DNA of 33,288 nt, from the NCBI GenBank assembly GCA_964200185.2, contig CAXNAD020000065.1, positions 1 to 33,288 on the forward strand, in the 5' to 3' direction. The stretch is from Choristocarpus tenellus KU-1152 (Eukaryota > Protista > Phaeophyceae). The position numbers and the translations under genes were made by a program. Positions 632 to 33,247 of this stretch are shown piece after piece. Below the pieces are notes generated by a model. It made no database searches. It was not told the DNA's origin and was given only the letters and a program-made list of their open reading frames with translations. Position 1 is the stretch's first letter; each line of letters begins with the position of its first letter.

Positions 632-767
632 GGATGTTTTTTTGCGCCTGCTTATTGAATGTTGCAAGGATTTTGCCTTGCGATCGGTTCCACAGCTCCG
701 CTCAGTCATGGTCAACCCTCTTGGTAACATGGAAGGAGGACCACCTCTGGAAGGAGATGATCTTAAG
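632..767 (+). CDS. RNF213: RNF213-like exon 1 in window (DVFLRLLIECCKDFALRSVPQ...DDLK)
   Basis: tacag acceptor at 631; AAG|gtgggg donor at 768. KDFALRS resembles the RNF213 RDFAT motif. An alternative donor at 724 is possible. Confidence 0.8.
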
Positions 768-3700
768 GTGGGGTTAGGGTGTGGACTTGCTTATATGGGA
801 CAGTGCTATGTTGGTTGTTGGGTCAGGGTTGGGCTCTTAAATTTACCAAGTGTGACATAGAATAGTTTGCAAACCTACAGATATCCCTCGACTGACATTT
901 TTTGAGTGATTATCACAATTCTGATTAATGCCTATGGTAGGAGCAATATTTCACCCTGCAGAAAGAAACAGTCTAACGCTTTAGCATTGTGCACAATAGA
1001 TCACGGCCCAGACTACAGGTAATGTAGAGCATTGTCATGAGTGTTGTCCTAGACAACAGACATTACCAACTGAATTGATTCAAATGCTGGCTAAACAATG
1101 GATGTTAGATAGCAAATGACTTTGAGTGTCTCATTAAAAATGGAAATTTTCAAGCAAAGGCCAAAATACCAGATACTATGAGGCAATTTGTCCGGAGGGT
1201 TGCTGGACAGGTGATATGTTGACAAAGCAAATGGGTCAGGGCGTTTGCTGGAAATGGGAATTACAGACCAAAGAGCTTGAGCTTTTGCAGGGCGATGAAT
1301 GTTTTCAGCTTGAGCAACGGATTTTTTTTTGCATTTTCTTTCTTCTGCCATACTTTCCCGGTGAAATTCTATGTTTGCATTAAAATATGAATAAGCTGTT
1401 GTTTCCCATGGCTTGCGTGTATATATATTTATGTATTGTTTTTTTCCTAATTTGGCTGGAATGGACGAATTACAAAGAGGAGAAAGGAGTGAGCCCCCTC
1501 AGCACAGAGGGGTCTACCTTGGCAGCAACAATATTCCAGAACTCTAACTTTCTCTAGTTCATCCTATTTTATCTTTCACACATGTTCTTGACGAGTGGCA
1601 AACTTTATGTGTGATATTTTTTTCATGCAGATGAGGTGCTTCGCAAAATGGTGATTGAGGAAATATCCTTTAGTGTTGATCTGCACAATATATGTTACAG
1701 AGCAAACTGCAACAAATGTTGTGCTGGCGACAGATTTTACGCTCAAGTCTCATACTAGACAGACATTACAGAGCACACATGCTCAGGGTTTAGAGATCAA
1801 CTGGTCACTGAACATTGTCCTGGTAATGGGCGTTGCAAGAAAACTGCGCAAACATTGTCATGGATAACCGACATTGAAGGATGAATATAGTGAAACACTC
1901 TAGCAAAGCTAGCATTGAGTGTTAGATTTCTTGAGACACGCAATATTTGACCATGAAGGTCTTGTTCTCGGTAGCTTGGAAAGAGACATTTGTTTTGTGT
2001 TGCCTACAAATCTGATATTACCACTCAAATAATGAGGTAATTGAATTATGTCAACCCTGCAATAGAGTGTGCCATTTTTTCACGTAGAGTTCTATACTGG
2101 TGAAAATTGCGGCATATTTGTGGTAGCCTTGCATCATCTTTATCGTGACTTGATTGGGATTGAATGTAAGTCGAAAAGCAGAGAACGCGACATGCCTGGG
2201 CTAGTTTTGCCTATCTTCTGACCGCACTGCATCTTTCATCTCCATATACATAATTATATTTCCTAGAATTTCCCCTATTCCTTAACTCCTCCAGCGTTAC
2301 TCACTTGCCACCTACCTCTAATTCTCCCCCCTTACACTTCCCTTTGACTTAACCTTCACAAGGCTAATGAGAGCAATGGCAATCCAGTGGCCTTTGTCAA
2401 AGCACCCATCAATATGGAAGAGTCGCGGTGCCTGGCCAGGCGTTTTCAGACTATGATTGGCTGGGAAAAGTCTGATCATCCAATCGTGGTGTTCAAGGCG
2501 GATACTCCCTCTGGTCAATTTGGAGAGGTGTCCGGCGTGGACATATTGAGTCTTAATCGGCACCCAAGGTTTGTTACACATTTGCTTAGTGTTGGTCTTA
2601 CTCAAGCATCAAATTCTAAGGTTCCAGTTGTCCCTACTTGAACACCACACTACTCTGTCCCTTCCCCAAATTGATGCTAATCTTTCTACCCTACCCATGA
2701 TTTACCCTTGACACTGTAGTACACACTGATGCAATTTTCTGTACATATAAATGCACTCCCTTTTAGGTTCACATACTAGAAATCCTAGTGCTCTACTGTT
2801 CCTGTGTAAACATCACAAGCACCCTCCACCTTGATCAACATAGTTCAGTCCCTTCCCTCAACACGACACTGCTCCACTTTCCATCCTGATTAGGATCTAC
2901 CCATCACACTACAGACCCACTCAAATTCATGCATGTGCATCCCCCTGAAGTGTCATGTACTGGGAATCCCCAAACAATACATTACACTCCCTATCGTGTT
3001 TTTTTCTTTGGCACAACCCCCTTCTTCCTCATTGTAACCCTGGAGTTTCTAAAAATAGAAATATCAAAGCTAGAAAACGATTGGCCTCCAAATGCAAGGT
3101 AGATATAGGGAAGGTGTAGGGAAGGCATAATACAGGCACTGCGTTTCTTGTGTCTCAAAAGAACGGTTTATACACAAATCTCCTATACTCTCATAACATC
3201 ACTTCAATGTGAGCTTACTTTTTTGTTCTATTTCAGATCTCATTAACATGAAATGATACCCTTAAATGGTGAAATTCCACATTACCACATCCTGGATATT
3301 TGCAAGCACTTTTTATCAAGTAATATTTTATGGCTAGTTGAAAAATCATGCATGATGTGCACACTTACGTTTGTGGACAATACCAGATCATCTACTCAAG
3401 GAATTATGACTTCCTGTATGATGCAAAACATGCTTAGTTTTGTTCACCAGATGTTTGCCAACTTCATTGTCCCTTCACTTGACCGCCTCTTGGTTTTTCT
3501 TCGCAGATTGGCAGATGCCTACATTCAGGAGCCCCTGAAAAGTGCTCTCCAAATCAATGGTATTGATCTGGCAAGAAATTGGGAATTAATTACGGCAGAG
3601 GAAGGTTAGTTCTAATAGCAGCATTGCTAATGTAAGATCAAAGCACCATTGAAAGAACAATTTCTTATCCCATGGAGGTGTACACCAATTCTTTGTCAAA

Positions 3701-6700
3701 TGATGCTGTAGTTGCATCGGCATCCATTTTAGTCTTTATTATAGTCAGAGGAAATTTACTACAGACAAGTGGCACAACATGAATCAATAATGGGACCAAA
3801 GTAAGAGGTCTAGAGTAGCATATACTAGGGTATTGTTCTAAATAAATGATATTACCATATATAATCTCCTTTTCGATGATAATCTCAAGCTTCTACCATA
3901 GACGTTTCTCACCACTGTTGGAGCAAAGTCTCTGTTCTGCGTTGGGTTATCTGGAGATTGCCTGTGGAGAAATTTTGTGCTACATGAGCAAACTCAGCAT
4001 GACCGGACTTTCGTATCTGCGAAGTATGAGATGTAACGATAAGCAACTTGTAATTTTTCTCGTCACAGCAATAGCAGAGTCAGCTAGGTGTGGGAACGTT
4101 TGTTTAATATTATCTGAGAAGTACCTATGTGAGGACAACCAAGTATACTACTTGTTGCAACCGTCCTTTTTGTCAAAATGCTACACAAAGTATATTGTAG
4201 TTGACCAACCATGGGTGGTGACTCCCTCCCTGTTCTTTAACATGGTTCCACAATACCTTGTACGCTAATGTTTTTCAATTTGTCCATGCTTCTATCCTCC
4301 ACTTGCGGTGTCCCTCTCTTGATCTGCCAGCGGTGGAACTGCTCAAGAGCATGGGGGGGGTGTTAAGAGCATGTGGGAGTGTAGCGTCAACTCTGTCCAT
4401 GGATGATGTGCTGGGGGATGATTATGTCTTTACAGTGGACAACCTGCTTAAGATGCTTAGCATTACCCTGAGGCTACAGGTATTGTAATGTGGAAGACTT
4501 GCATAGCATTGGGAATGAAATTATTCTTATGTTCCTGTGATAATTGACTGGTGCTACATATACCTCTAAGTGGGAGCAAACGGGTAGTAGCCAATGATGA
4601 TAGTTTGGTGCTCTGCTATAATGCTCCACAATAATAATAGCAAGTTTTGTCGTCCTTGTAGGTTCAATGGTATAGAAGCGTTCTCTGTCACTGTGCTCAT
4701 ATCTTGCTCTGCACTTTGTTATGAGGATTATTTCAACTGTTGTGCACTGCCAAGCATTTTTGTATATATTTTCTTCACCCACTATGTTCTTGAGGGCCTT
4801 GACGATCAGTTCTAACAAGAATCTGTCTTTGAGCAGGCGAACATGCCAGTGGTGATCATGGGTGACACAGGCTGTGGAAAGAGCAGGTTGGTATCTTGTA
4901 TGTGCTCTATTTTGGATTGGCCACTTGCAGTACTTAATGTACACAGTGGACTCTCCTACACCGATATTGTACACTGGGTGGAAGAGCAGGCATCATTGGC
5001 GCGTGCAGCAGAGGCAGCAGGGAGGGCGGGTATCACTGTGATCCACCTGGATGAGATCAATACCTGCAACAGTGTTAGTGAGTGATCCATGTACCAGCAG
5101 GACCGAGGAAGCAATTTCTTGATAAAATGTTTTAGTGGAGTCCTTTTTGTTTTGGTTGAAGAATAGGTCTGAAAGTTTGAACTTCGATTTTTCCCAAAAA
5201 CAGAGATATTGGATAGATTTTCGTCAATTTATAACAGGCTGACCGTTACAACTGTGTGATTCTTAACACCATGATGTATGTGATCCCAAGGTCTCTTCAA
5301 GGAGATCGTGTGTGACGGGAGTGTGGATGGGAAACCTTTGCCTCAAAGTTTACGCATTGTGGCTGCATGCAACCCATACCGACTCCGTGCATCCAAAAAA
5401 AAAATTGCCAGCACTGAAGGAGTGAGGCGTGGACCTAAACGTAATGACCAACTAGTGGTTAATGGAAGGGGATTGGGAAGGATGATGGGTGCAGAAAAAT
5501 CTGATCTTAATGTTAAAGATCTTGTCATCGATGCATCAGGAATGGAAGATATTGATGGCAACGTAGTGGGCTTATCCACTGGAGTCACTGACCCTATCAA
5601 GGTATTCCCAAGGGGTTGAAGTGTTTTGCTTGAAATACTATGTAATAATCTAAATTTCTAAGAGATACTTTGATATCTAGTGCAAGTGCATTAACCAAAT
5701 TATCACGAGAATTTTTGCTCTGGCATTGTTGTGTCTTCCAACTATGATTCTTGTTAACTGCCTGCATCTAACAACTCTGAAAATTTGGTATACCTCTAAG
5801 ATTCTATGGCAAGTACGGGGCATATTGAAGGTATTGATAAGAGATATTGCCTTGATTCTTGTGGCTGGACTACAGAATGATGTAACGACACGCGGAATTG
5901 GCAAGTAAGAAGTGAAGATGTTTAGATGTTTAAATTCTGATACATTAATGCAAGGCTGTGTTGAAGGAGCAGTAAGAGTAGGCTTCAGGTTGAGTCATAC
6001 GGTGATTGACTGTTTCAAAAATTTTCATCCTGTGTCCCACAGGGGTCATGCGGAATGGAAATAAAATAATTCTCCAAGAAGGATCTGTTATTTTGTTAAG
6101 GTCTACTATAAACAATGAACTTAATTTGTAATCCCTGGCCCTATCCTTTGAACCCCCCCATGCCGTGTACTGAATCAACTTGTTCATTGATACGTGTATC
6201 AGGATCTAGTGTACAGAGTACACCCCCTCCATGAGTCGCTTGTTGACCATGTGATGGACTATGGAGCCCTGAAGAGATGCACTGAGCGCCAATACATAGT
6301 GGCGATGGTCAACAAAGGGCTTGGGGATGGAAATGGTGGGTAGTTGATAAGAGGTGCCATACCTGAGTAGGTATGGGGGGTAACATACTGTAGTTAAATT
6401 AGGCATCTTTCATATCCCTTATTATCTGTGTGCCTAGTAATCAAGAACTTGATTGACATAGCAGTTGGTTTTGAGACCATTATTTCTGAATTCTCGAGGT
6501 ACAACAAATGGTCTTGCTGAACTCGGTGGCAGCCATGTGCTGTAACCAGAAATAGAAGCGCTAGTTACGGAGGTTAGAACACATTTTTGATATACTGTGC
6601 ATAAGTATGGCTAGGTCTTCTCAAGGTCTGACTGACGTTTTTACTGTTAATATGTGGACTGATTGAGCATTCTCGTACGGATCAGAAGCTGTCTTACCAA

Positions 6701-9700
6701 AAAGTCTACATTTCAGCTGTCAAGAAGCAGGTAGGGTGAAATATCTCTCTTGTGGTACATCGAGAGTATCTAAAATTCTATCAAGCCAAGCATATCTTGT
6801 GAAATACATTTGAGGAACCAGGGCGATGGAAATTACTTAGATATGCTCAAAGTGCTTACTATAATTAGGTTAATTGAAGGCATTCCCAAATGCTTGTATG
6901 TGAATTGTGCTTGGTTTCTTCGAAATTATGCAATTTATTGACTTGCCTGTAGCACAAGGTTAGAAATATGTTGGATTTTCTCAAGTAAGAGATGACGAAA
7001 TTGTCACCTTTCTGGTACAGTTCGCAACAGCATCTTTCAGTCGGTAGTATTTCCTATTATTATCTACACATTCAAACACAGAGATTCCACACCAGAAAGA
7101 ACGATTTTGTAAGGTCTTAGGCTTCGTAGTTGAGCAATAAATGCATTTCGAAGTCATGATTCGCATGAACTCCTCCAACACCTGGTTGAGAACGGAAGGA
7201 GTACACTGTATTTTGCCAGGCTAATATGGAACTTTCATATTTTCTAATATTTTTCTTGTGCAGGTAGAGTAAGGAGTCCTATATCTGGATTATTAGAGGT
7301 CTTCTCAGAGGTACTTTGTACAGCACAAGAAACCTTGCGTACCCTCTTTGGTGGAGAGAGGGCTACTGTGTCCCTGAGGGATGTATCTCGTTGCATCAAG
7401 GTGAGATCTTGTGTACATTTGACAAAGGGGCGACAAAACTGGGGGCTAGGAGATTGTTAGGGATAGAGTGATGTCAAGCTTGGGGAGGTAAAGGAACTTG
7501 TATGGTGAACAAACCCTATCATTAAAACTGTGGCATGTAGGTTATTTGTTTGGGGCAAGTTTTGTCTTTTGCTCTGTGTCCCCTACCCCTTGATCTTGAT
7601 CTTGATCTTGGCATTACTCTAGAAATCTCAAGCTGTGTAAGGATCGTGACCACCAATGAATCAGGAGATGCCTCAAGCTTGGGGAAAGGAGAAGAAATCT
7701 GGCGTAAGTAACATGGACGAGCCCCAGGGCAATAAGCTAACTCTTGCTTAAGGAATGTATAATTCTTCACTTCTGATGATTTCACTAGACCTCTACACAA
7801 TCATATTTGCAACACATTGAGTAGGGTACATTTTTAGGTCATTACCTGAAAGGTGTCAAGATCAATCTGGAATGTGATCACTATTGCATTTTTTGGTTTG
7901 GTGCATAGCACCTTAAATCCAAGTTAGAGCATGATCATTTGACAGTCCTCAAGAATGTTGCTAATCATTTCCACACAACTACCTCCAACTATCTCCCCAA
8001 ACACACTATAAATGCACATGTTACAGGTCTTTGTGTGGCTTGGAAAAGAGTGGGTGATACATGGTAGCAACAGCCTCATTGCTTCATCTGCTCAGTTGAG
8101 GACTTTGCCAGGATTTTTCAATTGTGAGGACAAGGAATCGAAAATGGCTGCAATGGAGGCTATGGTACTTTCCCTGGCATACTCTTACCTTGCACGACTC
8201 CCAAGGTTTGTGCCGTTGAATTATGCACTTGTGCTTTTCAGTTATAACTATACTGCAGAGCTCTCGGAGCACTTTAGAGGTATTTTTCCTGTTATTTGTA
8301 TTTCAAGCTGAATCTTTTCATACATGAAAATAGCACCCCTGGTAACCTACTCTCCTAGCATGCACTGCCCAACACTTAAACAACTACTCATCTGTTTCAC
8401 TCCCAGGACTATTTCAATCAATGGGCAATTCTGTGTGTCTGGTCATTGGGGAAGAGAAAATTGAGAAAAAATAAACGAGAGGTGCCCAGGTTTCTTTGTT
8501 TTGGGTTCATCTTTTGTTGTTCACCCTTATATGGTTGAAGTGCTAAGATTGACTTGACAGCAATGATTTCTATGTTGTTCGCAAAATTTTAAAAAATTCA
8601 GAAAATTTTATATATTCATTTGTACAAAACCGAATTTTATATAAAATTATCAACATCCTTAGAATTTAGCTCTGGATACCTCTCATAATATTTCCCTCTT
8701 TTCTTTCCTGTTTCCCATTTCATGGTGCTAAAGGCCTGATCGAAATGTGCTTGTTCGGGATGTCTGCCGGACAGCGTCTGTTTGTGGAAGTCGTTATGGG
8801 TTAAAAATGGATGCTACATGGTTTGCTTCTACCGTGCGGAAGAGCGCACAAAAAACTGCTGGTGAGAACAACCTTGGGGGGGGGTATTGTGGTTGGTATG
8901 TTGTAGTGAAGCATCTTAAGCTCATTCACGGTTTCATTGTTTCAATTTCTGAAATGAAGCCTGTTTCTGTTTTCTGTCTTGCAGCTTCGACTCTTTGTTC
9001 CTACTTGATGGGGGTAAGGTGGAATATATTTCCTCTGAGTACGCTTTTGTGTTGCTGGAGTAAGTATGCGAAAACTGTTGCTTTCGTCAGCCTTCTCAAA
9101 TTTGGTGGTTGAGTTCTATCAACAAAGCTGTAGTGACTGAGGATGTAAAAATCCCGCTTGTGATATTTTGCCTTCCTGCCTTGCCTACATCTATCGGACT
9201 GTTACTGGTGAATATGGGGGAGGTGGTGATGATGAATACCACACCATAATGTCAAGAATACTAATTTCGGTCGTATTATAGTATGAAAATGTTTCATTTA
9301 TAGTATTGTTCTTCAAAGAATCGAAACATGTGTTTGGTTCAGTATTAAATGGCTAACTCAGCTGTAGATATATCAACATACGACATCCATGATTTTCCAC
9401 ATATATGTGATGATGGTACTATTGGGCAAGGCCATTCTCATCTCCCTTCCTTCGCTAACATTCAACCCTACTGTATGGTCAGCTCCCAACATCCTTCCTG
9501 ATAACAAAAACTAGGGTAAAATTTGAGAAACTGCAAATATGGATGGGTTACTAATGTGCTTGTCATGTGGAAAAAGTTCAATTGGGTGCAAGAAATATCT
9601 TGTGTTCATGCTGAGTCCATTTTTTCTACAGTTTTTCTTCAATCTGCCGTGAACTGTAGTAAGTGGGGCATGGGGATCACTCCATAGGGTTTACGTTTTC

Positions 9701-12700
9701 CAGCATCTAAAGCAACGTAGTTCATTGTTGGGTGGTCTCACAACGTAGAATTTCGAGTGCTAGCACACTTTGACCTTGCTGAAAGCTAAATAGTGAATGG
9801 AGTGCCTCACCCTCCAAAAATCATTGACATTTCTTTGAATAGTCCTGTTGATTACAAACACACTGTACTTCACTATTATTAGTACACACATTTCGAAATG
9901 AAGATAAGAGAGTGAGAACGCAAGTATGTGATTATTACATGCTTGACTGGGTGCATATCTACAGAATGAAGAGGCCAGGCCTAATTCCAAAAGTGGAAGC
10001 TTTGCCATTTTTGTTGTGTACATCACTATGATCAAATTTCTATTCTCCAAATATGATTCACTCCTGCAATTTTGCAAATATTATGAGGCGGGGGGTGAAG
10101 ACAGAACTCATCTACTAAAATGGGTAGTTTTCGGGATAGAATATTGGTACTACTCTTCTGCTGGCTCAAAGTATCTGGGGGAGGAGTGGGGATTTGCACC
10201 AGGATTTCTTTTTGGTTCCTGACCAGGAGAAGTGCATTTACATTATCCATCTGATGCATGCAACCAAATCATCCCAAAATCCGATATGGAAAATTGGGTC
10301 CCGACTGGACAGCCACCCCCCCCCCCCCCCCCCCCCAGATACTTTGAGCATCAAGAATCAACCTGGGCAGATGTCTTTATGCCTTTACATAATCCTAACC
10401 TTCGGTATACAATGTGAAGACTGTCTAAATACTAACGAATAACCTCAGGAATATCTCGAAGCCCTTCCACCCCCTGGCCAAGTGCAACTATTTGAGGCTT
10501 TCCAAAATTTCGTGTAATATTATATGCTCCAGATATTGAAATACAGTTTCAACACTGTAGTCTGACAAGAGCCTTGCTCTACATAGACTATGTTGCACTA
10601 CTTTCACTGTAAAAAGTTTTGATATTTCATCAAACCTCTGAAGCTAGAGCATGTGTTTGTCGCCTCATATATTCTGTGTATCTGTTGAGATCAGGCATAT
10701 GAATATAGTTGGCATGCCGAGTGTTGATTATGTAATTGTCCTGAACAAAGTTCTACAGTTCAACATGCCTTCGGCATAGCAACTTGATTGCTTAGGATAA
10801 GTTCAAGCTCCACACTTCCTTGAAAGTACACTATCAGATAGGACAGGATATCTGGGGGAACAACTTGAACTACCATGGTGAATAGCAGATCATCTTCACA
10901 CATTGCGAGCACAAAATAGTTTTTAGAGGTTAAGGTGTACACCATGAATTCAAGAAGAAACACATTAGGAAGAGTAAGACAAATGAAAACAGGGACAGCA
11001 GGGGGCAGGGGGTGCTACCTCTACAAACAAGGTGTATGTAGATTGCTCAGTGCGCGAAGAATTTGAACAGTCCAGCAGGTGGTCAAAGGTGATCAGCAGA
11101 TAATGTGAGGGCATATGAGGACTTACACTCCCAGGGTAGAATACCTCAGTAGACTAGTGTCAGTTCTGAAGCAGTTCTGCTCAGACAAAGTCAAGATGAG
11201 TAGAATAAAGATGGTTATCTAAGAAGGGAAGCTGATAACACTTTAGTCAGTAATAGATAAGAGCGTGGAAATCCAAGATCAGACCACTTTGCACACTCCA
11301 GTAAGCAATATTAGTATCTACTTGTAGTATGGCTGTGGACACAAGGACCATCATGAGGCCAGGTAGCTCTTCGATGGTGCGGCAAACAATGGGGAACAAT
11401 CACCAAGAATGGGGAGTGATGGGAAAGGGTAATCTAGTTAGGAAGGGCATGTGGCAGTTGCTTAATCAGCAGGAAGCACAGCCAGGGGGAGAAGTGGGAT
11501 AATGCTGGCCCCAGACAAATTGTAAGAGAAAATACTTTGTTGAGAGGAAAACATCTTTAAATTTCACTTTTTATGATGCTGCTCATTCCCTCAAGTTCTA
11601 CATTGTACCATAAATCAGTCTTTTTTGATTGGGCAATATGCTCGAACTACTGCTGCGTTAGGCACCATGGGATATTGTCATTAGAAATTGAGTACAATAT
11701 TCTGCCTTCAACACCATATTGGGTTAGTTTACCAATGTTCCGTCAACTGAGTTCTGCAACATAGTGAGAATACACAAGAATTTCAGGGTTCCATATATTG
11801 TTGCTTGAATGGAGTGAAAATATTGATTACAGTCGAAAATATTACAGCAGCTTGACTTTTTTGCACTGGTCCACTTTGTTGCTATTTTGTGAGTGAAAGT
11901 ATCTTATTAAGAGAGAGTACGAGTTTTGCCCTGTTTGTCCGTTTGGGGCTTGACTTCCCATGGGGTTTTTTATGACATTTTCCTATCCGAAATGTTTCAG
12001 AGTAGGTAATGTGTATACGTTATGAAAAGTGTGTCCAGAACAAGCATATTGGCACTTCCTAACAAATATGATAGTCAAAATTATATCAGAATCGCAACCT
12101 TGGATGTTGGCCCCCAAACAGACGCGGCTCTACCCTCTAAGATAATTTGAATGTGTCACCCTGACTAGTATGATTTAGGTTGTAGTGACTTGTCCTACTA
12201 CCTAATTACCCTTTTTCAGAGACTGTCATTCCTCCTGCTTCTCCTTTCTGGTACAGAGTGCCTTTTTCTTGACCATTTCCCATGTTAATTTGTCGCTCTC
12301 CATACATTCACACATACCCCCATCAGAGAGTATGATCCTTGGCCCAGGGGTAGCTGCGAACGAAGCTTTGAGTGAGAACCTTTTTGTGCTCCTCGTAAGC
12401 ATAGTCAACAGCATCCCGGTCTTTGTGGTAGGCAAGCCTGGCTCTTCAAAGTCTCTTGCAATCAGTGTAATAATAGAAAATCTACGTGGCCAGGCTAGTG
12501 TCAACACTTTCTTAAGGTCACTTCCGGCGGTGGAGGTCTTCTTTCACCAGTGCTCACCAATGTCTACTAGTCATGGCATACTGCAGGTGAAGTAGGACGA
12601 GAATGTCACTGAAAAATTCACTGATATCCTTTAGTAGTATAGGATGTAAGATAGCATGTGGTTTGGCATAATGATATCTTCTTTGAAACTCAATTTTATA

Positions 12701-24700: not shown

Positions 24701-27700
24701 GACAGACAACTACGATTGGCGGGGACATTTCAAAGGGCTATTCGTGCCTTGGTGAGAAATAGCAGAACACAATTTAGAGGAGAGGTAGAGGGACCAGGAA
24801 AGTCATGGGCGATATGCAGGGATGTTGAGAGGCATGAGGTGTGCTGAAAAAATGAGTAAGAAATGCAAGAAGGGATAAGGAAAGAGGACAAAGTAGATGG
24901 TATGAATTGGAATCACGGACGTTTGACAGAACACCGGATTGTAGTCTGTTCCAAGTTGAATCCATTGTTGCTGTCTCAACATGGACTCTAGGAATTTTGT
25001 TCTTGAAGCTGAGAATGTTACATCAGTTTTGTTGACCCTCATATTTAGCACTTCAGACATGCTTAGGGACTTATTTCAGAGATGTGTTGAAGCAGCAAGT
25101 CTGTGTCTGTAAATTATTAGTACACAAAGTAGATTTGCCAAAATGCCCTGGTTTATTTGCCAAACATGAACTGTTGACCTCCAGAGTTTCTAAGCACACT
25201 TTTTTGTAGTGTTACCGCCAACAAAAACCTTTCACCACACAGGCATTTTCCCATGACTCGTTACTTTGCAGGTATTGGGATCAGTGACTAGGGGCTTTTC
25301 CATGGTTCTCTCACATATGGACCGAAATTCTGGACTTTCTCTTCTGAAGGAGGAAGGGTTGCGCGAACTCTGGATTGATCTGTTCCAGGTTAGTTTGTGC
25401 CAATATTCTTCAGTGTCCAAGGAGTTGCAGAAACGAGTTCAGGGGAGCCCTTGTGCCGACATGGATTTGTAGCATCTTTCACATGTTGGGAGCGGGTGAC
25501 AGAGGTCTAGTCTACTCTAATTAATGACTTTCAGGGTTTGCACAGTTTGTGTCCTTGGTATGGGTGAATATTAGAGCTTGAAGAGGTTCACCTCTGCCTC
25601 ACAACAAAACAACTCAGAGCCACAATTTTTGCAAGCTACTATGCGTTTTTTTTCTCCTTTCCTGTTAAAGTCTTGACTCTCTAAGCTCTACTCTCTCACA
25701 TTGCAAAAGTGCTAGAATTCTGCTTCATTTTAAAAGTATGTGTTTGTTTTTTTATCTCTTGCAACCAAGACGTGTGACCTTCTTGAAGCACTGAGAATGT
25801 AAATTTGAGTTCATTAAAATGCGGTAGATTCTTATCCTTGTTCCTCACACAAAGCCTATGTTGAGGATGCAACACCAAACATTTCTTATCCATGAATCCT
25901 TTACTATACCCCTTACAAGAAACAGCATTGTCTCTGCTGCTCCTACCTTGCTTGATGTTGATCATGATCACGCTCAGGCCTCCTTTCATAGCATGGGCTT
26001 TCTGCCGCTGGCTGTGCAACCATCTTGGCCTCGATTGCACTCGCCTGTTGCAGCGCCTGCCACCTCATCTTATTCCACTGGATCTCTCATCTTGCGAGGC
26101 GCAGAGAGGTTTGCTGTTTTGGACACTACCCTTAGTCCTGGTGATCCTTCTCTCCACTGTAAATTCCCATTCAGCTTTTTTTTGTTCCGCCTACTGGAGG
26201 ACCTCAGGCGCAACCGAGGAGGGGTGGCTGGGGCTGGAGGGGAGGGAAGTTATACACATGCTGATGTCACAGACAAGGGTAATCACTCCTGTTCGGAGAG
26301 TGAGAACATCTTGAATGACTCAAGTATGGATAAAGAAGAGGCTCTGAGAAGTGAGTTTGCCCTGCTGGGCCTTTGCGATCGAATTCATGGTGACCTGCGC
26401 AACCCATCTACATTTCGTAGTAGTGCATTGGATCATTGTGATGATCGTCCACTCTCTCAGGCTGGTAGTTTGGGCATATCTACAGCACTATCGATGAGAT
26501 GGAGCGAGGGTGAGAGCTTGTTAGAACGTTATGTTTATGACTTTACATGCATGATGCTACCCTCAGTACGGGACATGACACGTAGTCACCAGGCAAGCCT
26601 CCTTCTCCTCCTCCTTGACCTTGAGGGGTGCACTGAAGTTTTGCCAGTAAGGCAGCAGGGGATGGCTCTAGGTGCAACGTCTCCACAAACATCAACCCTG
26701 GCTGCAGTCCACCACCGTTTCTGGCAGGTCGAACAATCAGCACGCCTTTACTTTAAACTACTGGATGCAGCTGGGCCACCTAGCTTCAGCCCTGTTACAA
26801 TAGTACTCAAGACCCGTCTCCAGGAAATGTTAGCTGGTGAAGCCAAACACTCTTGCCCTGCTGTTGATGGCAGCCTCCACCTCAAAGTGGCATGTGTTGT
26901 CGTGAATGCACTCATGGACTTCAATGCACAAGGTATCACAAAGGTGACTGTGTGTGGAGAAGGGCGGGAGAAGATGGACATGGGTGAAGGTGTAGATTGT
27001 GGAAAGTGGCTAAGGTGGGTGGATGCAGCAGACTTCGCCACCCAGACTCTACTCAATCTTGTGCACTCTTTGAGCAGTAGTACCACTGCCACTTGTGAAC
27101 ATGGATGTGAAATGGGAACCTGTGATGTCACGAAAGAACAAATGGAAGGAGATGGAAGGGGGGGAAATGGCTCAGGGACAGAGGGTAACCCTGGAATTGA
27201 TAAGGACGGTATGGTGGAGCAATGTCTAAATTCTCTACAAGAGGGTTGGCTGAGGCTGCGACTGATGAGGGATTTGGTTAGAGATATGGCAACTCCTCTT
27301 CACCTCTCCCCTGCAGACACTCTGGAAGCACTTCATGTGTTAAGAACATCACCAGGGCCAGTACTATCTGCAGTTTTTTTCAAAGAGATTATACTTCTGC
27401 TTGCAGTGGTTGCTCGAAAGATGGGATTGGCAGATGAGACAACGGTTAGCTCAACCGAAGACATCCGTGCTGGTGGAACTCCGATCACCACTTTTCTTGA
27501 AAGCAATTTATTAGGAGGTTTGACTTTGGGTCAATCTGACAATGGTAATGACAGAGATTTGAGTTCGACCTCTTCTGCAATTTTCGCTGATCCAGAAGAT
27601 GTGCTGCCACAGTATCTGGAGGGGTATCTGTTCAATGTGGTAACATGTTGTGGAGGAGAAACAGTCACTGCTTATTCAGCTAGCAGAAGGAGTGGCGAGT

Positions 27701-30700
27701 GTGGCTGTAACAGGGCTACAATCGGTGGTGTCAGCTGCCAGGGCAGCAGAAGAGTTGAGGGTGCAGGTCTTGGCACCTCTACATCACCTACTCTCCCTTG
27801 GAAGTCATCGACTTGTTCCTCTATGGGAGACTTATCATCAGTACTGATTATGACTCTTGCTGGAGACTGTAGGTCATTGTTGGAGAACCTGTTAGCTCAT
27901 GGTGGTGCCAGTGGTGGTGGGCACGAGATGTCGATTTCTTCAAAGCACTTAGAAATTGTAATGCCACGAGATTCAGCTTGCATCCGCGTTCTTTCATGGG
28001 TTAGGGGAGTTGAGAGTACAGATCTACACCGTGAATTACGGTCTGCTCTGTTGAAGGAGTTCAGGGAGACAGGTGACTTACGCCACACACAATTGACTTT
28101 CCGCTTTGTGGCTGCTGCTGAGGATGGTATGGAACTGGACGAGGTGACTGCAATGCCTTAGGGTGTAAAGTACACTGGAATGTGTATGGTAGGCTTTCGA
28201 TAGAATTTGGAATTTTGAAATGGAAAAAGTGCTCAAGCAGTTGAAACTATGGTTGACATTTTTTAATAGCATGTACTCTCACAAATTGTAGCCTCTTGCG
28301 TAAATTCAAAATGATGCGACACATTTATTTAGAGGTTCATTTTTGCTTATTTAGATTCTTTACTTTGGGTCCAATGTACTAGCAAACCGAATGACCCATA
28401 TTGCCCACCATTTCCCTGTAATCTTGATACACCAACAACAACATCTGACTGAGTAGTACCAAACCTCAAAATGAGTTGCGCAGGCTTCTTTAAAGGGCGA
28501 TGATTCTGCGAGGGCATTCGCACCCGATAGAAGTGGTACCATGGATACCCCTGGGATAGCAACACACCAACCACGAGTCAGCACTCAAGCCAAGGAGCAC
28601 AGGAGCGAGGACAGTATGTCCCTGAGATTGGAAAAAGAATTCTTGGCTATAGCCTGCATGCGCAAGGTAGCATGTGCTGCAGCAGAATTCTTGCTCAGAA
28701 CGTCACAGAGAGGTAAGCAGTAGACATTTCATGCTTGCCTTGTTCTGCTCTGTGGTTTGAATGGAGAGGAAAGGGCGCTTGAAATTTGTGCTCTTGTGTT
28801 CTCATCACTTGACTGTGAATAGAGATCTAAGCAGTTGGGTATCACGATTGTGTACACAATTAGAGCAAAGCAATCAGGAAAATGAAGTGTAGCAAAGGTC
28901 AAGAGATTATTGCAGTACACCAATGTGATCATAGAATTATCTATTTCATGCATACCCCTCATGTTCACAATTTGAGGAGTACTCCTTGTGGTGCTGGTAA
29001 CACATGTAACTGTTGCCTCTGCTGCAGGTGGCAACCTTAGCCAAGTCGACCAACGCAAGGCTGCAAGGCTACTAGACGTCCTGACCTCAGCCTTAGAACT
29101 GCACAATGCCACAGTTACATCCGAAAAGGATGAGAAGGAAGTTGAAGGGTCAGAAATGAAAAATACGGCTCACCTCCGCATGTTTCTTCTCAGGCAACTG
29201 GCATTACGACCAGAGGGTGGTATAGAGGTGCTCCGCAATGCTCTTCGTTGCACACCCCTGATCCAATACCGATGGGTAGTCCATGATGACCCCCGGATTG
29301 CAGCTTTCGTGGGTAGCAGCCGCCTACCCCAGGTATGAAAGCCATCACAGACTAACAAACCTTTTGAGGAGCGGACTAAAGAGCTTGTTGAATGTCACAA
29401 GTTTGTTGTTGCCCCCATGTCTGCTGTCATTGCCATTCGATGTGCTTGTACTCTTGTAATAGATGGAGGATTCAAATTTTTGTGAACAATTAGAGAAAAA
29501 TACAAAATAGAAATCCCTATTCATGTCTCCTCTGGTTCTTTGGCACACTGGGTTATCTTGAGCACAAGGGAACACAATGAAGTCAAATTGCTCTACAGCA
29601 CATAATTCTCTCTATTGAGATCCAGCATAGTCAAGAAACTGCTTCCAGCATTTGTGTGTATATATATATATATCAATGATGTGTTTCTACAAACTGCAAA
29701 AACCCCCGTACGGTCCTTGCTAGGCTCGATAGATCAGATTGAAACATTGTTTTATTTGCAACGAACTGTTCGTACCTAAGTAACTATGAGCACACATGAA
29801 TGTGTGAACATTTTACAGATGAATATTGTGTAGTTTTTTTCTTGTCTTGACCGAAGAACGCAATCAGACCAGTACATGCAGTTAGTGTGCTAGGTGTCTA
29901 TCTTTGATGAGGGGGAGCTTGGGCGCTTCTACATTATTTTTTGTCCAACCATGACATGATATCCATTTGAAGTGAATTGTATATGAGTCAAGTATGAATG
30001 TTGGACAGGTGGAGGTAGGGTATGTATGTTATGTATATACTACTATTCAGTGGGATGATCTACGTTTCAAAAGGAATCACACCCTCTATGTTGTGATATA
30101 TTTGACACAGTTGCCATTAAAATGAGCCCAAGAGGGCAGTACATCTTCCGAAATATTTTTGTTATATAAGTGACAGATAGGGTAGTCACATCATGTATCC
30201 AGTGGACTGGGTGTTCAATAGGTATTGAATAACACATATCTAGTCATATCCTCACCTTTCTTACTAAAATTTTATGATGGGGTGACCTCATATGGCAGTT
30301 GTCAGCCGGTAGTAAGGAAATATCCAGCTTTTGTCTATGTTGTGGATGTGTCACCGATTTCGTAATTGTAGTGTTGGAGACTGATATTTTTGAAGTTAGT
30401 GGTAGCTGTAGATTCTATCCACTTGTTTTCCCTTGCTGCCTTCTTGAAGGTGCAGAAAATATTACACCGATTGCCCGCTGCCACGTGTTTCCAGATAAAT
30501 CCCCTCGAAAGAGTCCCATTCTTTCACGATTGTCGTATGGCATTGAGAAGATACATGACCTCAGGAGACTTGCAGAAACTGGAAGCAAGACTGATGGAAG
30601 TGGCCTCTCCCGCAAGGATCAATGGTGAGTAGTGAGGGATTGGAACTGGCTAAATGAGGCTCTTCTGTTCGTTGGCTATATACGAAGCAGTCAAGTTCAA

Positions 30701-33182
30701 AGTACATGAGAGAACTTCAGAGAAAAGGGGTCAGTTGACGTGTAGTAGCATCAGAGGTTAATTGAATCAGGACCAAAGAAAGGGGCATGTTCTACCATTG
30801 AGTGTTGCATTCGGTAAAGGTTAGATTGTTGAACAGTATAGGTAAAGAAGAGCAACCAACTTCCCTCATGTCCTCCAGTTTGTGATCCAGCCTAAGCTTG
30901 GGAGGCGATATTGCTTTGATGTGTATGTCCTATGTACACGTTCACACTTGAGTGAAATTCTGTATGAACAAACGTCCATGCTACATTGCACGCCATCCCT
31001 TACCATCCTTAGGTCGTACCTTGTACTTTCACCGTTCCGTATTGTGTCATTACTGTACTCCATTCAATATTGCCCTCTTACTATGAGTAAACCTTTGCCA
31101 AGACATTGCTTCGAAGTCCATGAAAGTGCCATACTAATTACTCCATGCAATATTTATCTGTGCAACATACAACGGAAACTGCATCATTAACCCTTGTCCT
31201 GCAAAGCTATTTCCTTTCCTTCTGTCCAAAGTTGTAAAAAAACGTCACCCTAATTAATGCTATCCATAAGTCTTTGGGGTCACATTGGAGTGCAGTGAAA
31301 AAACATTTGATATATGGTCCATGGCACTTGTTATCTGTGGTAAAATAAATCTATTGCCTGTCCCTCTTCCTATTATATGGTGCCGGATCTTTGGCACAGG
31401 ATTGGGAGCCTTCAAAGGGGGACTCCTAACTGGACTCTTTTATGAGATGAACCTTATGCAGGTAAAGGGATCTTGCAAGACCATTGGAAACCTCCATATC
31501 ACTATAATATCCTTCTTAGAAGGAAAAAGGCTCCTGTGATTTGGGCTAGTATGCATAAATGCCAAATGTTTTGTTCGTACATGAAGCTGACACTCACATA
31601 TCCTGATGTTAAGGTGCGGAGTTCCACTTCTCTTGTGAACCAGGAGGATGACGTTTTTTTGAGTATTTGAGTTTCTCTTCAAATCCTCGTAAAGTGTAGG
31701 TGGCTGAAGGGCTTCATTTTGTAGTACTTGCCATCTTTTTTCATCTTTATGGAGATACCAAAGGCAATTGTTGAGGCTACCAGTCATGTAATATTTAGAG
31801 CACATTATTTAGAGTGCAGGGGTGAAGTGTAGCCAGTATCGTGGCTAACATTATACTCCTAGATGATCCCTATTGCACACTTTCATTTTGAGTATGAAGA
31901 AAGTATGAGTAAATTGTGATGTAATTTTTTAAGGATCTGGATGCACCGAAAAGAATCAGGGCATGTTCTCTTTATTGTTCTTGTGTGAGGGTGAGTTGAG
32001 TGCAAATATGGTAGACTCTAAGTTGTAATTCTGATTTGATTGCTACCTTGAAATTGCTAGGTTGGATGGCTTGTTGCTGTGGGTAAAAGATGGTAAGTCA
32101 CAGGTAGGGCGGTACAGAGAAAGATACGTAATGAAGGGTTAAAATATTGCACTCTTACCCCCTTCGCCGTCTACTTGTCAACCAATGCAGGTTAACTCAG
32201 AATTCAGTGAAGCCAAGGGCCACCTTCAGCTTCATGATCTGGGGGAAAGAGCTGAGATCCTTGCATTTTGGCTGTATGATTCCGCCTCCCTATCATTTCT
32301 CTCTCGTGTAGAGCGCTGCCTACTTGTTGTCTTTTCCGGGATCAAGGTGGGTGATGAAAGCAGTAGAGATGCTGGTGACAAGAGGAATGGCATTGGCAGG
32401 TCACGTGCTTTTGGATGGTCTGGTGCTACTACTGATGGTAGTCAGGGCAAAAAGAGTGCTGATGAAAGCAGAGATGCTGCCGAGGCTATGCAAGCTCGGG
32501 AGAAATTGAGACTTGGTCGGGATAGCTCGCTATTGCAGATTGTAATGGCCAGACTCGCTGTGCATGTCGTGGCTGCAGCTCTTGCCGCTCATCCATCAAG
32601 TCCTCTCAAGTTTTTCGAACAGCTTGTTACATCACCTGCAGCCCTTCGTGGAGGTATGAAAGTGTGCTCTGTGAAATATGAGGTGCCAATATGCTAGTGC
32701 AAGTGGAAAAAAGGTTGGACAAATTCTGAACGTAATACAAAGTACTGAATGGGGCACTATGTCCAAGATGTTGTGCACAGCAGGAACTATAGTGGTGAAG
32801 CATTGTGTTGGAATGGGAGAGTTCTTGTTATTAGAGCCTCTTAACATGCAGAAAAATGTAATGCAAGTACTTGTGAATTTCTTTGGAGTTTAGTAACAGA
32901 AACGTCAAATAAAATTAAAAACCTGTTAGTTTTTCCTGTACTACTCTAAGGTTATCACCTGTTTCAAGACCTTCAGGAGGTGCCATTCACTGCAAGTGTT
33001 ATGATGCCTCGTGATCTCTTCAATCACCTCCACTTTTGTCCATGCTAGGTCCTTCTTGATGAAAGATTAACAACACAATCAAACTTATTGTGTTCTGCTT
33101 GCAAATGCTTTGTCACTTTACTTTGTCGGACCACCTGATAGCATATCTTCCGACCATGGAGGAATCCCTAGACCTTCAGCAA
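632..33182 (+). CDS. RNF213: RNF213/mysterin-like giant AAA+ ATPase / E3 ubiquitin ligase, partial at both ends, 33 exons: join(632..767,2363..2568,3507..3604,4331..4479,4837..5077,5291..5601,6203..6335,7264..7400,8027..8205,8734..8861,12327..12586,13113..13220,13701..14056,14833..14961,15421..15547,16484..16615,17053..17246,18043..18118,20000..20123,20537..20944,21500..21753,22367..22509,22698..22986,23707..23781,24374..24751,25272..25388,25978..28143,28484..28712,29028..29332,30495..30624,31400..31461,32191..32653,33142..33182)
   Basis: All 32 introns are GT..AG with matching phases, and the spliced frame (8,284 nt, first base completes an upstream codon) is open throughout. The ordered motifs match RNF213 as recalled (human GETGCGKT, AACNPYR, LVYRVH, SLRDV, GKPGSSKS, QCSP, VLDEVGLAE, GISNWALDPAKMNR, YESLYDALNQ, FPFSW, FLPTM). 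Family assignment is strong; strict orthology is untested. Confidence 0.93.
2363..2568 (+). CDS. RNF213: exon 2 (ANESNGNPVAF...WEKSDHPIVVF...NRHPR)
   Basis: Pyrimidine tract plus caag acceptor; AG|gtttgt donor. WEKSDHP matches the RNF213 WESxxHP motif. Confidence 0.82.
3507..3604 (+). CDS. RNF213: exon 3 (LADAYIQEPLKSALQINGIDLARNWELITAEE)
   Basis: ttcgcag acceptor and G|gttagt donor; phases 2/1 fit neighbours. Confidence 0.85.
4331..4479 (+). CDS. RNF213: exon 4 (...DDYVFTVDNLLKMLSITLRLQ)
   Basis: ccag acceptor and CAG|gtattg donor. YVFTVDNLLKM matches the RNF213 YxLTxDNxLK motif before the AAA3 Walker A. Confidence 0.92.
4837..5077 (+). CDS. RNF213: exon 5, AAA3 Walker A GDTGCGKS (4861-4884) and Walker B IHLDE (5041-5055)
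   Basis: gcag acceptor and A|gtgagt donor; canonical P-loop and hhhDE. Confidence 0.95.
5291..5601 (+). CDS. RNF213: exon 6 (LFKEIVCDGSVDGKPL...IVAACNPYR plus insertion)
   Basis: caag acceptor and AAG|gtattc donor; AACNPYR sensor-I motif. Confidence 0.92.
6203..6335 (+). CDS. RNF213: exon 7 (DLVYRVHPLHESLVDHVMDYGAL...)
   Basis: Absent from the ORF track; read by hand. tcag acceptor and G|gtgggt donor; LVYRVHPL motif. Confidence 0.9.
7264..7400 (+). CDS. RNF213: exon 8 (...EVLCTAQETLR...VSLRDVSRCIK)
   Basis: Absent from the ORF track. tgcag acceptor and AAG|gtgaga donor; VSLRDVxRC motif. Confidence 0.92.
8027..8205 (+). CDS. RNF213: exon 9 (VFVWLGKE...LSLAYSYLARLPR)
   Basis: tacag acceptor and AG|gtttgt donor; phases 0/2. 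Confidence 0.88.
8734..8861 (+). CDS. RNF213: exon 10 (PDRNVLVRDVC...KSAQKTA)
   Basis: Pyrimidine tract plus aaag acceptor; G|gtgaga donor. Phases 2/1 bridge exons 9 and 11. Confidence 0.8.
10164..10349. mobile_element. MITE-like element (186 bp) with 18-bp perfect terminal inverted repeats, intron 10
   Basis: gctcaaagtatctggggg (10164-10181) is the exact reverse complement of cccccagatactttgagc (10332-10349). No clear target-site duplication. Confidence 0.6.
10316..10336. repeat. poly(C) tract, 21 nt
   Basis: Read directly from the sequence. Confidence 0.95.
10760..11520 (+). mobile_element. Possible heavily decayed retroelement gag fragment in intron 10 (boundaries approximate)
   Basis: Purine-rich stretch unlike the flanking intron. 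It contains *YGCGHKDHHEAR* at 11325-11366, which has CX2CX4HX4C spacing with stops at the outer Cys positions. Confidence 0.25.
12327..12586 (+). CDS. RNF213: exon 11, AAA4 Walker A GKPGSSKS (12431-12454), ANEALSENLF and HQCSP motifs
   Basis: tcag acceptor and CAG|gtgaag donor. GKPGSSKSLA is the signature second P-loop of RNF213. Confidence 0.96.
13113..13220 (+). CDS. RNF213: exon 12, AAA4 Walker B VLLDEVGLAEQSPHLPLK
   Basis: gtag acceptor and AAG|gtgaga donor. Confidence 0.95.
13701..14056 (+). CDS. RNF213: exon 13 (VLHKILD...GISNWALDSAKMNR...FWGLREFYS...)
   Basis: acag acceptor and AG|gtttgg donor; near-invariant RNF213 motifs. Confidence 0.95.
14833..14961 (+). CDS. RNF213: exon 14 (...VVLRNFGGR)
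   Basis: ccag acceptor and AG|gtttga donor; VLRNFxG motif. The frame differs from ORF 14838..15056. Confidence 0.9.
15421..15547 (+). CDS. RNF213: exon 15 (PQSETFEVLNVFF...ELIRDNLAEKK)
   Basis: Long pyrimidine tract plus acag; AAG|gtttga donor; phases 2/0. Confidence 0.88.
16484..16615 (+). CDS. RNF213: exon 16 (ARHLMLLTKNNAAL...VLFGSDFPGD...)
   Basis: tcag acceptor and CAG|gtacgc donor; RxLxxLTKN and FGSxFPxD motifs. Confidence 0.93.
17053..17246 (+). CDS. RNF213: exon 17 (VKACMARGGTVVL...YESLYDLLNQHY...DPKFR)
   Basis: atag acceptor and AG|gtatag donor; YESLYDxLNQ motif. Confidence 0.95.
18043..18118 (+). CDS. RNF213: exon 18 (VVVVVESIEAYEKLAPPLLNRFEKQ)
   Basis: ccag acceptor and CAG|gtgagt donor; PLLNRFEK arginine-finger-type motif. 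Confidence 0.93.
18242..18510. repeat. Degenerate long inverted repeat, possibly an old MITE, intron 18
   Basis: Left-arm blocks agaggtctcct, atcttga, ttgagtattagagg and aaccttctg are mirrored in order by caggaggtt, cctcaatactcaa, tcaagat and aggagaccctct. Confidence 0.5.
20000..20123 (+). CDS. RNF213: exon 19 (ILGWREVLDLF...GQTDS)
   Basis: ttcag acceptor and AG|gtgaaa donor; phases 0/1. Confidence 0.85.
20537..20944 (+). CDS. RNF213: exon 20 (RWGEMRKAFPGY...SLVL...LLWVATPEAV...)
   Basis: gagcag acceptor (tandem NAGNAG) and CAG|gtggag donor. FxGY and ATPxAV resemble RNF213 motifs. Confidence 0.85.
21500..21753 (+). CDS. RNF213: exon 21 (DKYFQHQTHGSLEDF...VTTYA...HELSQ)
   Basis: tcag acceptor and CAG|gtgaag donor; YFxxQxHxSxxDF and TT motifs. 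Confidence 0.88.
22241..22276 (+). repeat. Duplicate of the exon-22 acceptor and first 7 codons
   Basis: aggaacgggatctaaagaagagg (22254-22276) versus aggaacgggacctaaagaagagg (22365-22387): 22/23 identical, with further partial similarity upstream. Confidence 0.85.
22367..22509 (+). CDS. RNF213: exon 22 (ERDLKKRVRDFF...LLLQFD...HAKFIVEDAR)
   Basis: aaag acceptor and CG|gtatgt donor; phases 0/2. Confidence 0.87.
22698..22986 (+). CDS. RNF213: exon 23 (...HVILLLHLIR...WGAAFVDSV...DPVK)
   Basis: catag acceptor and AAG|gtattc donor. Confidence 0.87.
23707..23781 (+). CDS. RNF213: exon 24 (VLLSTMRASLARLDFCEGRFHSVNL)
   Basis: T-rich tract plus gcag; CTG|gtacgg donor; symmetric phase 0. Confidence 0.8.
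24374..24751 (+). CDS. RNF213: exon 25 (VREQICLL...LAGTFQRAIRAL)
   Basis: gcag acceptor and TTG|gtgaga donor; AGTF motif. Confidence 0.85.
25272..25388 (+). CDS. RNF213: exon 26 (...SHMDRNSGLSLL...LWIDLFQ)
   Basis: tgcag acceptor and CAG|gttagt donor; DRxxxLxLL and LWxxxF motifs. Confidence 0.88.
25978..28143 (+). CDS. RNF213: exon 27, 2,166 nt (722 codons), E3 scaffold (CKFPFSF...ERYVYDF...AAVH...AAAEDG)
   Basis: Lies inside the 767-aa ORF. ctcag acceptor at 25977 and GAG|gtgact donor at 28144, both phase 0. FPFS motif. Confidence 0.88.
28484..28712 (+). CDS. RNF213: exon 28 (...EFLAIACMRKVACAAAEFL...)
   Basis: gcag acceptor and AG|gtaagc donor. Confidence 0.85.
29028..29332 (+). CDS. RNF213: exon 29 (...LRMFLLRQLALRPEGGIE...RWV...)
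   Basis: tgcag acceptor and CAG|gtatga donor. Confidence 0.87.
30495..30624 (+). CDS. RNF213: exon 30 (INPLERVPFFHDCRMAL...)
   Basis: tccag acceptor and ATG|gtgagt donor; phases 0/1. Confidence 0.85.
31400..31461 (+). CDS. RNF213: exon 31 (GLGAFKGGLLTGLFYEMNLMQ)
   Basis: acag acceptor and CAG|gtaaag donor. Required to restore phase (1/0) between exons 30 and 32. Confidence 0.83.
32191..32653 (+). CDS. RNF213: exon 32 (...ARLAVHVVAAAL...PLKFFEQLVTSPAALRG)
   Basis: tgcag acceptor and GAG|gtatga donor. AVHxxA and SPA motifs match the pre-RZ region of RNF213. Confidence 0.88.
33142..33182 (+). CDS. RNF213: exon 33, 41 nt (AYLPTMEESLDLQQ)
   Basis: Absent from the ORF track. atag acceptor and CAA|gtgagt donor. 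Phase 1 joins to give SPAALRGAYLPTM (human ...AFLPTMPED). Confidence 0.85.
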
Positions 33183-33224
33183 GTGAGTATCTCCTCCACA
33201 TGAACACCCTGGTGTAGACCCCCT

Positions 33225-33247
33225 CCCCCCCCCCCCCCCCCCCCCCC
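33225..33247. repeat. poly(C) tract, 23 nt
   Basis: Read directly from the sequence. Confidence 0.95.

Follow-up and report, generated by a model that had tools for sequence, protein, structure and literature searches.

The stretch of DNA analysed here (the window, 33,288 nucleotides) raises the question of whether a giant AAA+/E3 gene of the RNF213 (mysterin) type is encoded outside animals and, if so, in which genome, how completely and with what possible function. The window is the entire contig CAXNAD020000065.1 (C65) of an assembly of 164 Mb in 27,310 contigs. It has a GC content of 39-50%, its + strand is dotted with short open frames, and a multi-exon gene runs along that strand throughout. 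In our reading, which we hold with good confidence, the window carries the middle ~2,790 codons of a transcribed brown-alga nuclear gene of the RNF213 family, from late AAA2 to AAA6, then across an E3-module scaffold up to the RZ finger lead-in; the gene would span the contigs C571, C65 and C6163 and have one paralog, on contig C11.

The gene model was built by a dynamic programme in which splice sites were limited to GT/AG positions shared with the C11 paralog. It comprises 33 GT..AG exons between 632 and 33182 on the + strand, with 2,792 codons and no stop, and agrees with the 33 exons and about 2,761 codons of the preliminary description (Table 1). The 32 introns range from 188 to 3,465 nt and average 755 nt; the donor at 5078 (GTGAGT, no preceding AG) is weaker than the others. 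Two gene finders run without the paralog constraint were rejected, one having over-extended the exons and the other having recovered one of the eight RNA junctions. A last exon at 32698-32893, which ends in a stop, was likewise rejected in favour of 32191-32653 and 33142-33182 on the alignment with P0015, a protein that is part of an almost intron-less gene on the JGI metagenome contig L010. The junction 32653|33142 restores SPAALRGAYLPTM, to be compared with SPKLLGNTYFPTM in P0015.

Three public sequencing runs (X1, X2 and X3) were mapped onto positions 12,250-18,200 of the window. X2 is evidently RNA, as its contigs are spliced, and X1 and X3 are unspliced DNA runs. In this interval the depth of X2 is 130-320 over exons and about 0-15 over introns. 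Its spliced contigs contain seven GT..AG joints between 12587 and 18042, and the junctions 8861|12327 and 18118|20000 are established by two loose ends. Hence nine of the 32 junctions are seen in RNA, in support of the splicing that had been proposed, and 23 are predicted only. The C11-restricted model recovered all eight RNA-known introns (8/8), and every RNA-known site falls within the conserved set. When joined, the eight RNA-defined exons give a single open frame that includes VFVVGKPGSSKSLA, VVVLLDEVGLAE and VGISNWALDSAKMNR; the same junctions carried over to C11 also yield an open frame. Further downstream, 94% of the words sampled from 25858-28161, a 2.2-kb stretch containing exon 27, are present in X2. 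The part of the gene carried by C65 is transcribed and spliced.

A second RNA form was observed in X2, in which 11492-11521 (donor 11521|GTAAGA, within the 3.4-kb intron 10) is joined to 12327. Read in the gene frame, this form meets a TAA six codons before the end of the extra exon, which is either a poison exon or the one that opens an internal transcript. Intron 10 is far longer than its equivalent in the paralog and contains repeats. At 13436, 13438 and 13440, in intron 12, the window has T and both DNA runs have G, which is an intronic assembly or strain difference.

Table 1. Features of the window, with the evidence for each (positions are those of the window)
Feature	Position	Strand	Evidence
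Exon 1, late AAA2, aa 1-45 of the partial model	632..767	+	C11-conserved splice sites; collinear with L010 ORF A from residue 1836
Exon 2, AAA2 end	2363..2568	+	C11-conserved sites; tblastn to L010 ORF A 1885-1959, E 1e-11
Exon 3	3507..3604	+	C11-conserved splice sites
Exon 4	4331..4479	+	C11-conserved splice sites; L010 alignment
Exon 5, AAA3 Walker A VIMGDTGCGKSRL (GDTGCGKS) and Walker B (VIHLDE)	4837..5077	+	PDB phmmer
Exon 6, AAA3	5291..5601	+	C11-conserved sites; L010 alignment
Exon 7	6203..6335	+	C11-conserved sites; L010 alignment
Exon 8	7264..7400	+	C11-conserved sites; L010 alignment
Exon 9	8027..8205	+	C11-conserved sites; L010 alignment
Exon 10, joined to 12327 in RNA	8734..8861	+	RNA contig loose end at 12326 = window 8832-8860
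Exon 11, AAA4 Walker A VVGKPGSSKSLA (GKPGSSKS), same as in RNF213	12327..12586	+	RNA joint; PDB RNF213 only, E 2.4e-16
Exon 12, AAA4 Walker B VVVLLDEVGLAE (LLDEVG)	13113..13220	+	RNA joints at both ends
Exon 13, RNF213 AAA4 motif VGISNWALDSAKMNR	13701..14056	+	RNA joints; PDB RNF213 only, E 9e-7
Exon 14	14833..14961	+	RNA joints
Exon 15	15421..15547	+	RNA joints
Exon 16	16484..16615	+	RNA joints
Exon 17, AAA5 region	17053..17246	+	RNA joints; PDB RNF213 only, E 7e-11
Exon 18	18043..18118	+	RNA joint and loose end reading into exon 19
Exon 19	20000..20123	+	RNA loose end at 18118 reads ATCTTGGGTTGG... = window 20000 onward
Exons 20-26 (AAA5, AAA6, hinge, start of E3 region)	20537-20944, 21500-21762, 22367-22509, 22698-22986, 23707-23781, 24374-24784, 25272-25388	+	C11-conserved sites; junctions predicted; region covered by a single blastp alignment, model against P0015 1-824, E 6e-149, gaps <=33 aa
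Exon 27, 722 aa, E3-module-like helical scaffold (predicted) with long Gly/Ser/Leu-rich disordered inserts	25978..28143	+	hhalign, AF2, Foldseek, VIA
Exons 28-31, E3 core region	28484-28712, 28977-29332, 30495-30624, 31400-31461	+	C11-conserved sites; local blastp to P0015 1219-1574, E 1e-19
Exon 32	32191..32653	+	79% aa identity to paralog; aligns to P0015 about 1514-1562
Exon 33, 41 nt, RZ finger lead-in, encodes ...AYLPTMEESLDLQQ	33142..33182	+	Frame still open at 33182
Dispersed repeat terminus, poly-C run and contig end	33194..33288	.	At least 192 candidate genome copies
Interspersed repeat of ~260 bp in intron 10	11889..12149	.	~7,400 (7,431) candidate copies, 86-93% identity

Family membership was examined with single exons as queries against 177,635 PDB sequences. 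Three queries matched RNF213 alone, namely 12329-12586 (E 2.4e-16), whose unusual P-loop GKPGSSKS is the same as that of RNF213, 13698-14186 (E 9e-7) and 17053-17244 (E 7e-11). The AAA4 unit has this Walker A together with an hhhhDE Walker B and the GISNWALDxAKMNR motif, and the AAA3 unit has a Walker A (GDTGCGKS) and a Walker B (IHLDE) in the exon at 4837-5077, which was aligned to RNF213 AAA3 at 1e-4. All motifs of the RNF213 AAA ring had been reported for the window; the Walker A and B motifs of AAA3 and AAA4 are indeed found in it, but AAA1 and most of AAA2 lie outside. Nothing useful came from scanning the ten largest open frames and the C-terminal exons against Pfam.

A search of representatives with the 722-aa exon 27 returned 20 matches, mainly single-exon fragments at about 40% identity, and these included P0015. 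The frames of the corresponding L010 gene match RNF213 over AAA1-3 (9e-16), from AAA4 to the RZ finger (3e-76) and in the C-terminal domain, CTD (3e-18), and its Pfam domains are UBA, AAA_5, U-box and RZ-finger. Local comparison of the joined spliced model was confined to the L010 frames, and that of the joined AAA4-5 translation of the eight RNA-supported exons to the relatives. The model is collinear with the L010 gene from residue 1836 of ORF A to residue 1574 of ORF C, the largest gap being at most 33 residues, with 35-41% identity over about 2,700 aa and blastp values of 9e-38, 1e-113, 6e-149 and 1e-19.

Could the gene encode a midasin- or dynein-type AAA protein rather than RNF213? We consider this extremely improbable. 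The exon with the AAA3 Walker A is the only one searched that favours midasin (3e-14, against 1e-4 for RNF213, in the PDB phmmer search), and ORF B of L010 has weak Pfam matches to AAA_5 and AAA_lid_7, but the midasin value is a sum across the six repeated P-loops of that protein. The other searched exons match RNF213 exclusively in the PDB, and the L010 homolog has a U-box, an RZ finger and an RNF213 CTD. Midasin (Rea1/MDN1) and the dynein heavy chain likewise have six AAA_5-type AAA+ units per chain, but without an E3 module, an RZ finger or an RNF213 CTD. Midasin or dynein identity was ruled out on the exon matches confined to RNF213 and on the RNF213 matches of the L010 homolog. Judged by sequence, the C65 gene encodes a predicted giant AAA+/E3 protein of the RNF213 family, as first proposed, and not a midasin or a dynein.

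The region downstream of the ring is less readily recognised. Exon 27 matches no Pfam family, and RNF213 was not found in the PDB either by phmmer with the exon or by hmmsearch with its 11-sequence profile. The first third of the exon was aligned by hhalign to residues 786-942 of P0015 with a probability of 98.8%. An AlphaFold (AF2) model computed from the 11-sequence alignment consists of helices and long disordered inserts, and its mean pLDDT is 56. With this model, the best six of the 350,542 chains searched by Foldseek are all RNF213 (E about 0.05-0.2), and VIA-align gives a Z of 11.3 over 342 residues to the E3 module of human RNF213 and 6.2 to the next chain, a Z of 11 being within the range that helical proteins reach by chance and the pLDDT of the model being low. 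These comparisons weakly suggest an E3-module scaffold with an RNF213-like fold in exon 27, in line with the E3-type scaffold described earlier. HECT/AZUL-like rows from a protein atlas search of the same exon were set aside for their low recognition.

No RING or U-box was matched by Pfam in the window gene even at E<=10, no Cys/His pattern is kept in both paralogs, and the few Cys clusters are not conserved; the RING had already been reported as missing. The RING of vertebrate RNF213 is dispensable for activity (Ahel 2020, PMC7311170). Its absence makes for a poorer match to the vertebrate architecture and leaves the family kinship unaffected.

We then consider the genome in which this gene resides. 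At least 150 EsV-1-7 repeat matches over the cut-off, from 404 candidates, were found in the assembly, and none in 14 control genomes. A large expansion of this cysteine-rich repeat is a hallmark of brown algae. Furthermore, the contig belongs to the brown-alga genome because the ~260-bp repeat in its intron 10 has ~7,400 candidate copies across the assembly. A contig from an animal or other contaminant of the sample, carrying an ordinary RNF213, is hardly credible: nothing beyond the fact that the best-known hosts of the family are animals speaks for it, while the intronic repeat, the likewise dispersed terminal repeat, the EsV-1-7 expansion and a tree that groups the gene with SAR protists, apart from animal clades, all speak against it. 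The preliminary description was therefore right in taking the genome as non-animal, and its guess of a streptophyte alga or early plant gives way to a brown alga, a stramenopile.

The family has two members in the assembly, the window gene and its paralog on C11. The latter is collinear with window positions 563-33187 at 70-84% nucleotide identity, and the AAA4-5 regions are 87% identical. Between the two copies dS is 0.39 and dN/dS is 0.38, lower in AAA4-6 (0.27) and higher in the E3 region and tail (about 0.5), each value being an average over both copies; on these sequence estimates the pair is under purifying selection. The C11 frame continues through ...IAYLPTMEKNLDLEQVRGVGTPYQCACGLIYAIGECGKPMERR, an RZ finger (PF20173) at 31.3 bits, above the Pfam cut-off, and the next C11 exon encodes the second half of the finger, CECGKTLGGIRH. 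C11 thus keeps a complete RZ finger. Several copies of the ~260-bp repeat, which is SINE/MITE-like, were seen in introns of both paralogs, C11 and C571 included. A weak RZ-finger-like match was also noticed on contig C1016 (14478-14552; 17.5 bits, below the cut-off), which may belong to a ZNFX1-like gene or be due to chance.

In the case of the window copy, the gene is not intact as had been stated. The window holds its middle only, the gene runs off both contig ends, and repeat sequence breaks into the RZ finger region. The whole gene very probably amounts to roughly 4,700 codons over the three contigs C571, C65 and C6163. At the 5' side, C571 (reverse strand) and the window share an overlap, formed by the last ~80 nt of the former and positions 1-80 of the latter. 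C571 has exons that show 56-66% identity with the upstream exons of C11 and match residues 953-1835 of the homolog (N-arm, AAA1 and AAA2), so that the window begins late in AAA2. A stop inside the C571 match was rejected as an exon break, since it is located before the conserved exon start.

At the 3' side, homology to C11 stops at 33187, give or take a few bases. It is followed by the terminus of a dispersed repeat (33194-33247), with at least 192 candidate copies in the genome, then by a poly-C run and the contig end. The window copy of the RZ lead-in, YLPTM...LDLQQ, lies at 33142-33182, and the second half of the finger, CSCGRILGGIDH, is found on C6163. That contig (reverse strand) opens with ~1.8 kb (1-1773) of decayed, DDE-type transposase-like sequence with several stops and a weak DDE_3 match (E 0.009). 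Beyond it, alignment of C6163 with C11 begins in the intron that precedes the second RZ half, followed by a post-RZ exon with 82% aa identity to C11 and by the CTD exons. The latter match ORF D of L010, which itself matches the RNF213 CTD at 3e-18; the alga's own exons match that domain weakly (E 1e-5 to 1e-2). The first half of the RZ finger of the window copy was not found anywhere in the assembly, and this segment of about 275 nt is either replaced by a transposon or located in an assembly gap. GTGAGT stands at 33183, and the borders of exon 33 and of the C6163 exon with the second RZ half appear to be in phase 0.

We observed that the repeat terminus with its C-rich run at the window end faces the DDE_3-like transposase at the start of C6163. 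Together, the two pieces resemble a Tc1/mariner-type element inserted into the exon region of the RZ finger. Given that repeat or transposon sequence occupies the place of the first RZ half, the ligase competence of the window copy is uncertain.

The window copy might thus be a degenerating or re-purposed duplicate whose first RZ half was removed or split by a transposon, either a ligase-dead ATPase scaffold, which could serve the C11 copy as a partner, decoy or regulator, or else a young pseudogene that continues to be transcribed. We regard this as a minority possibility, unlikely but not negligible. The end of C11 homology at 33187, followed by the repeat terminus, the transposase-like opening of C6163, whose alignment with C11 begins only at the intron preceding the second RZ half, and the absence of the first half from the assembled genome would all fit such a fate, as would the higher dN/dS of the E3 region and tail (0.49-0.52, against 0.27 in AAA4-6). 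That ratio, however, averages both copies, and the repeats at both contig ends leave room for an assembly gap of the missing ~275 nt. Moreover, the window copy keeps 2,792 open codons, is strongly expressed and is correctly spliced, and on C6163 the CTD exons are conserved and the post-RZ exon retains its high identity to C11.

A search with P0015 returned 149 relatives of 885-2,817 aa. Among them are entries from dinoflagellates (Prorocentrum, Polarella and Symbiodinium, in some cases under the names 'rnf213a' or 'RNF213'), from other protists (Bigelowiella, Cercozoa and Pelomyxa, the last as 'rnf213-alpha'), from fungi (Endogone, Jimgerdemannia and Glomeromycota), and from a fern record, Ectocarpus fasciculatus, molluscs, a sponge and fish. 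According to precomputed Pfam lists, many of the protist relatives have an RZ finger without a RING or U-box. The gene at L010:2284-16757 is itself an RNF213-like protist gene of about 4,770 aa, in which the N-arm contains a UBA, a U-box stands where the RING would be, and both an RZ finger and a CTD of the RNF213 type are present; four close kin with 62-85% identity were seen in other metagenomes and in Logan assemblies.

In a quick, unrooted maximum-likelihood tree of the AAA4-5 region (48 rows), the window gene and C11 are paired within a clade of Cercozoa, Bigelowiella, dinoflagellates and the U-box metagenome genes (SH-aLRT 94). Vertebrate RNF213 is placed elsewhere, alongside some mollusc sequences and Pelomyxa. 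The divergence that was initially remarked on is supported. A third position is taken by the Ectocarpus fasciculatus protein P0085 (NCBI 'unnamed protein product'), together with a Symbiodinium protein. P0085 is also a brown-alga RNF213-like protein and has an RZ finger, but it shows 31-58% identity to the window gene in the AAA4 exons and falls in another clade; no closer counterpart of it than the window and C11 genes was found in this genome. Brown algae may hence hold two old RNF213-like lineages with differential loss.

Compared with vertebrate RNF213 (PDB 6TAX, 8S24 and 9JWG), the algal gene appears to have the same module order, with the N-arm on C571, a dynein-like AAA ring, the E3 scaffold, the RZ lead-in, and the CTD on C6163. 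As in the vertebrate protein, Walker motifs are present in AAA3 and AAA4 only, and the GKPGSSKS P-loop and the GISNWALD.AKMNR motif are identical in both. Unlike it, the alga has no RING, its E3 region is not recognisable by sequence, long disordered Gly/Ser-rich inserts are present and the RZ finger of the window copy is interrupted. In P0015/L010 and their nearest kin a U-box occupies the RING position and the N-arm contains a UBA; neither domain lies within the alga's window, and the 32 introns of the algal gene part contrast with almost none in L010. ZNFX1 shares the RZ-type zinc finger, present here in C11, and no homology beyond it; ZNFX1 is an SF1 helicase without a six-AAA ring.

No study of RNF213 relatives in brown algae, stramenopiles or protists was found in the literature. 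This agrees with the earlier statement that no characterised example was known in the lineage, but the novelty was overstated, as many RNF213-like proteins are already in public databases. The C65 gene adds a member to a family already known and does not represent a new kind of system, and outside animals that family is visible in databases and uncharacterised in the literature found.

As to function, by analogy with vertebrate RNF213, ATP binding at AAA3 and AAA4 would gate a RING-independent ligase, which would take ubiquitin from an E2 and hand it on via the RZ-finger/CTD region; ubiquitylation of non-protein or pathogen surfaces could be possible for such a ligase. This ATP-gated, RING-independent transfer is inferred from the vertebrate protein (Ahel 2020, PMC7311170), and a UBE2L3 transthiolation intermediate is among the PDB titles of the RNF213 structures matched. 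The mechanism would fit the C11 paralog, given its full RZ finger. Purely by analogy, an immune, pathogen-ubiquitylating role in the alga may be hypothesised.

Vertebrate RNF213 acts at lipid droplets as well, and the algal genes could instead encode a working RNF213-like ligase with a housekeeping role, such as the control of lipid-droplet or organelle surfaces or the quality control of proteins and lipids. RNF213/mysterin is also cited in a review of lipid droplets in immunity (PMC8240858). The high expression in an ordinary RNA run, with no infection recorded, and the presence of two copies only, with no expansion of the immune-receptor type, are consistent with housekeeping, but a paralog pair with disordered, fast-evolving inserts is compatible with host-pathogen conflict, and we see the housekeeping role as possible rather than probable.

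A wider proposition, which we put forward as quite improbable, is that RING-independent ubiquitin coating of the RNF213 type, through the RZ finger, is an ancient, eukaryote-wide, cell-autonomous defence that brown algae have kept as a RING-less pair. The window copy, with a transposon in place of its first RZ half, would then use the GTGAGT at 33183 as a donor for an in-frame splice to C6163 and act as an RZ-crippled regulator or decoy of the intact paralog.

The gain from this locus is modest, as the window is part of one gene and the point at family level can already be read in databases. RNF213 is commonly presented as a protein of vertebrates, and has been called 'expressed in all vertebrates' (Ahel 2020, PMC7311170). 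The locus and the 149 relatives extend the machine made of AAA ring, E3 scaffold, RZ finger and CTD to brown algae, other SAR protists, amoebae and early fungi. The RING is often absent from it and sometimes replaced by a U-box, which fits the RZ/CTD route, and not the RING, as the ancestral catalytic core. For the pathology of brown algae, namely the oomycete, viral and bacterial infections of kelps, the window gene and its C11 paralog are a candidate gene pair.
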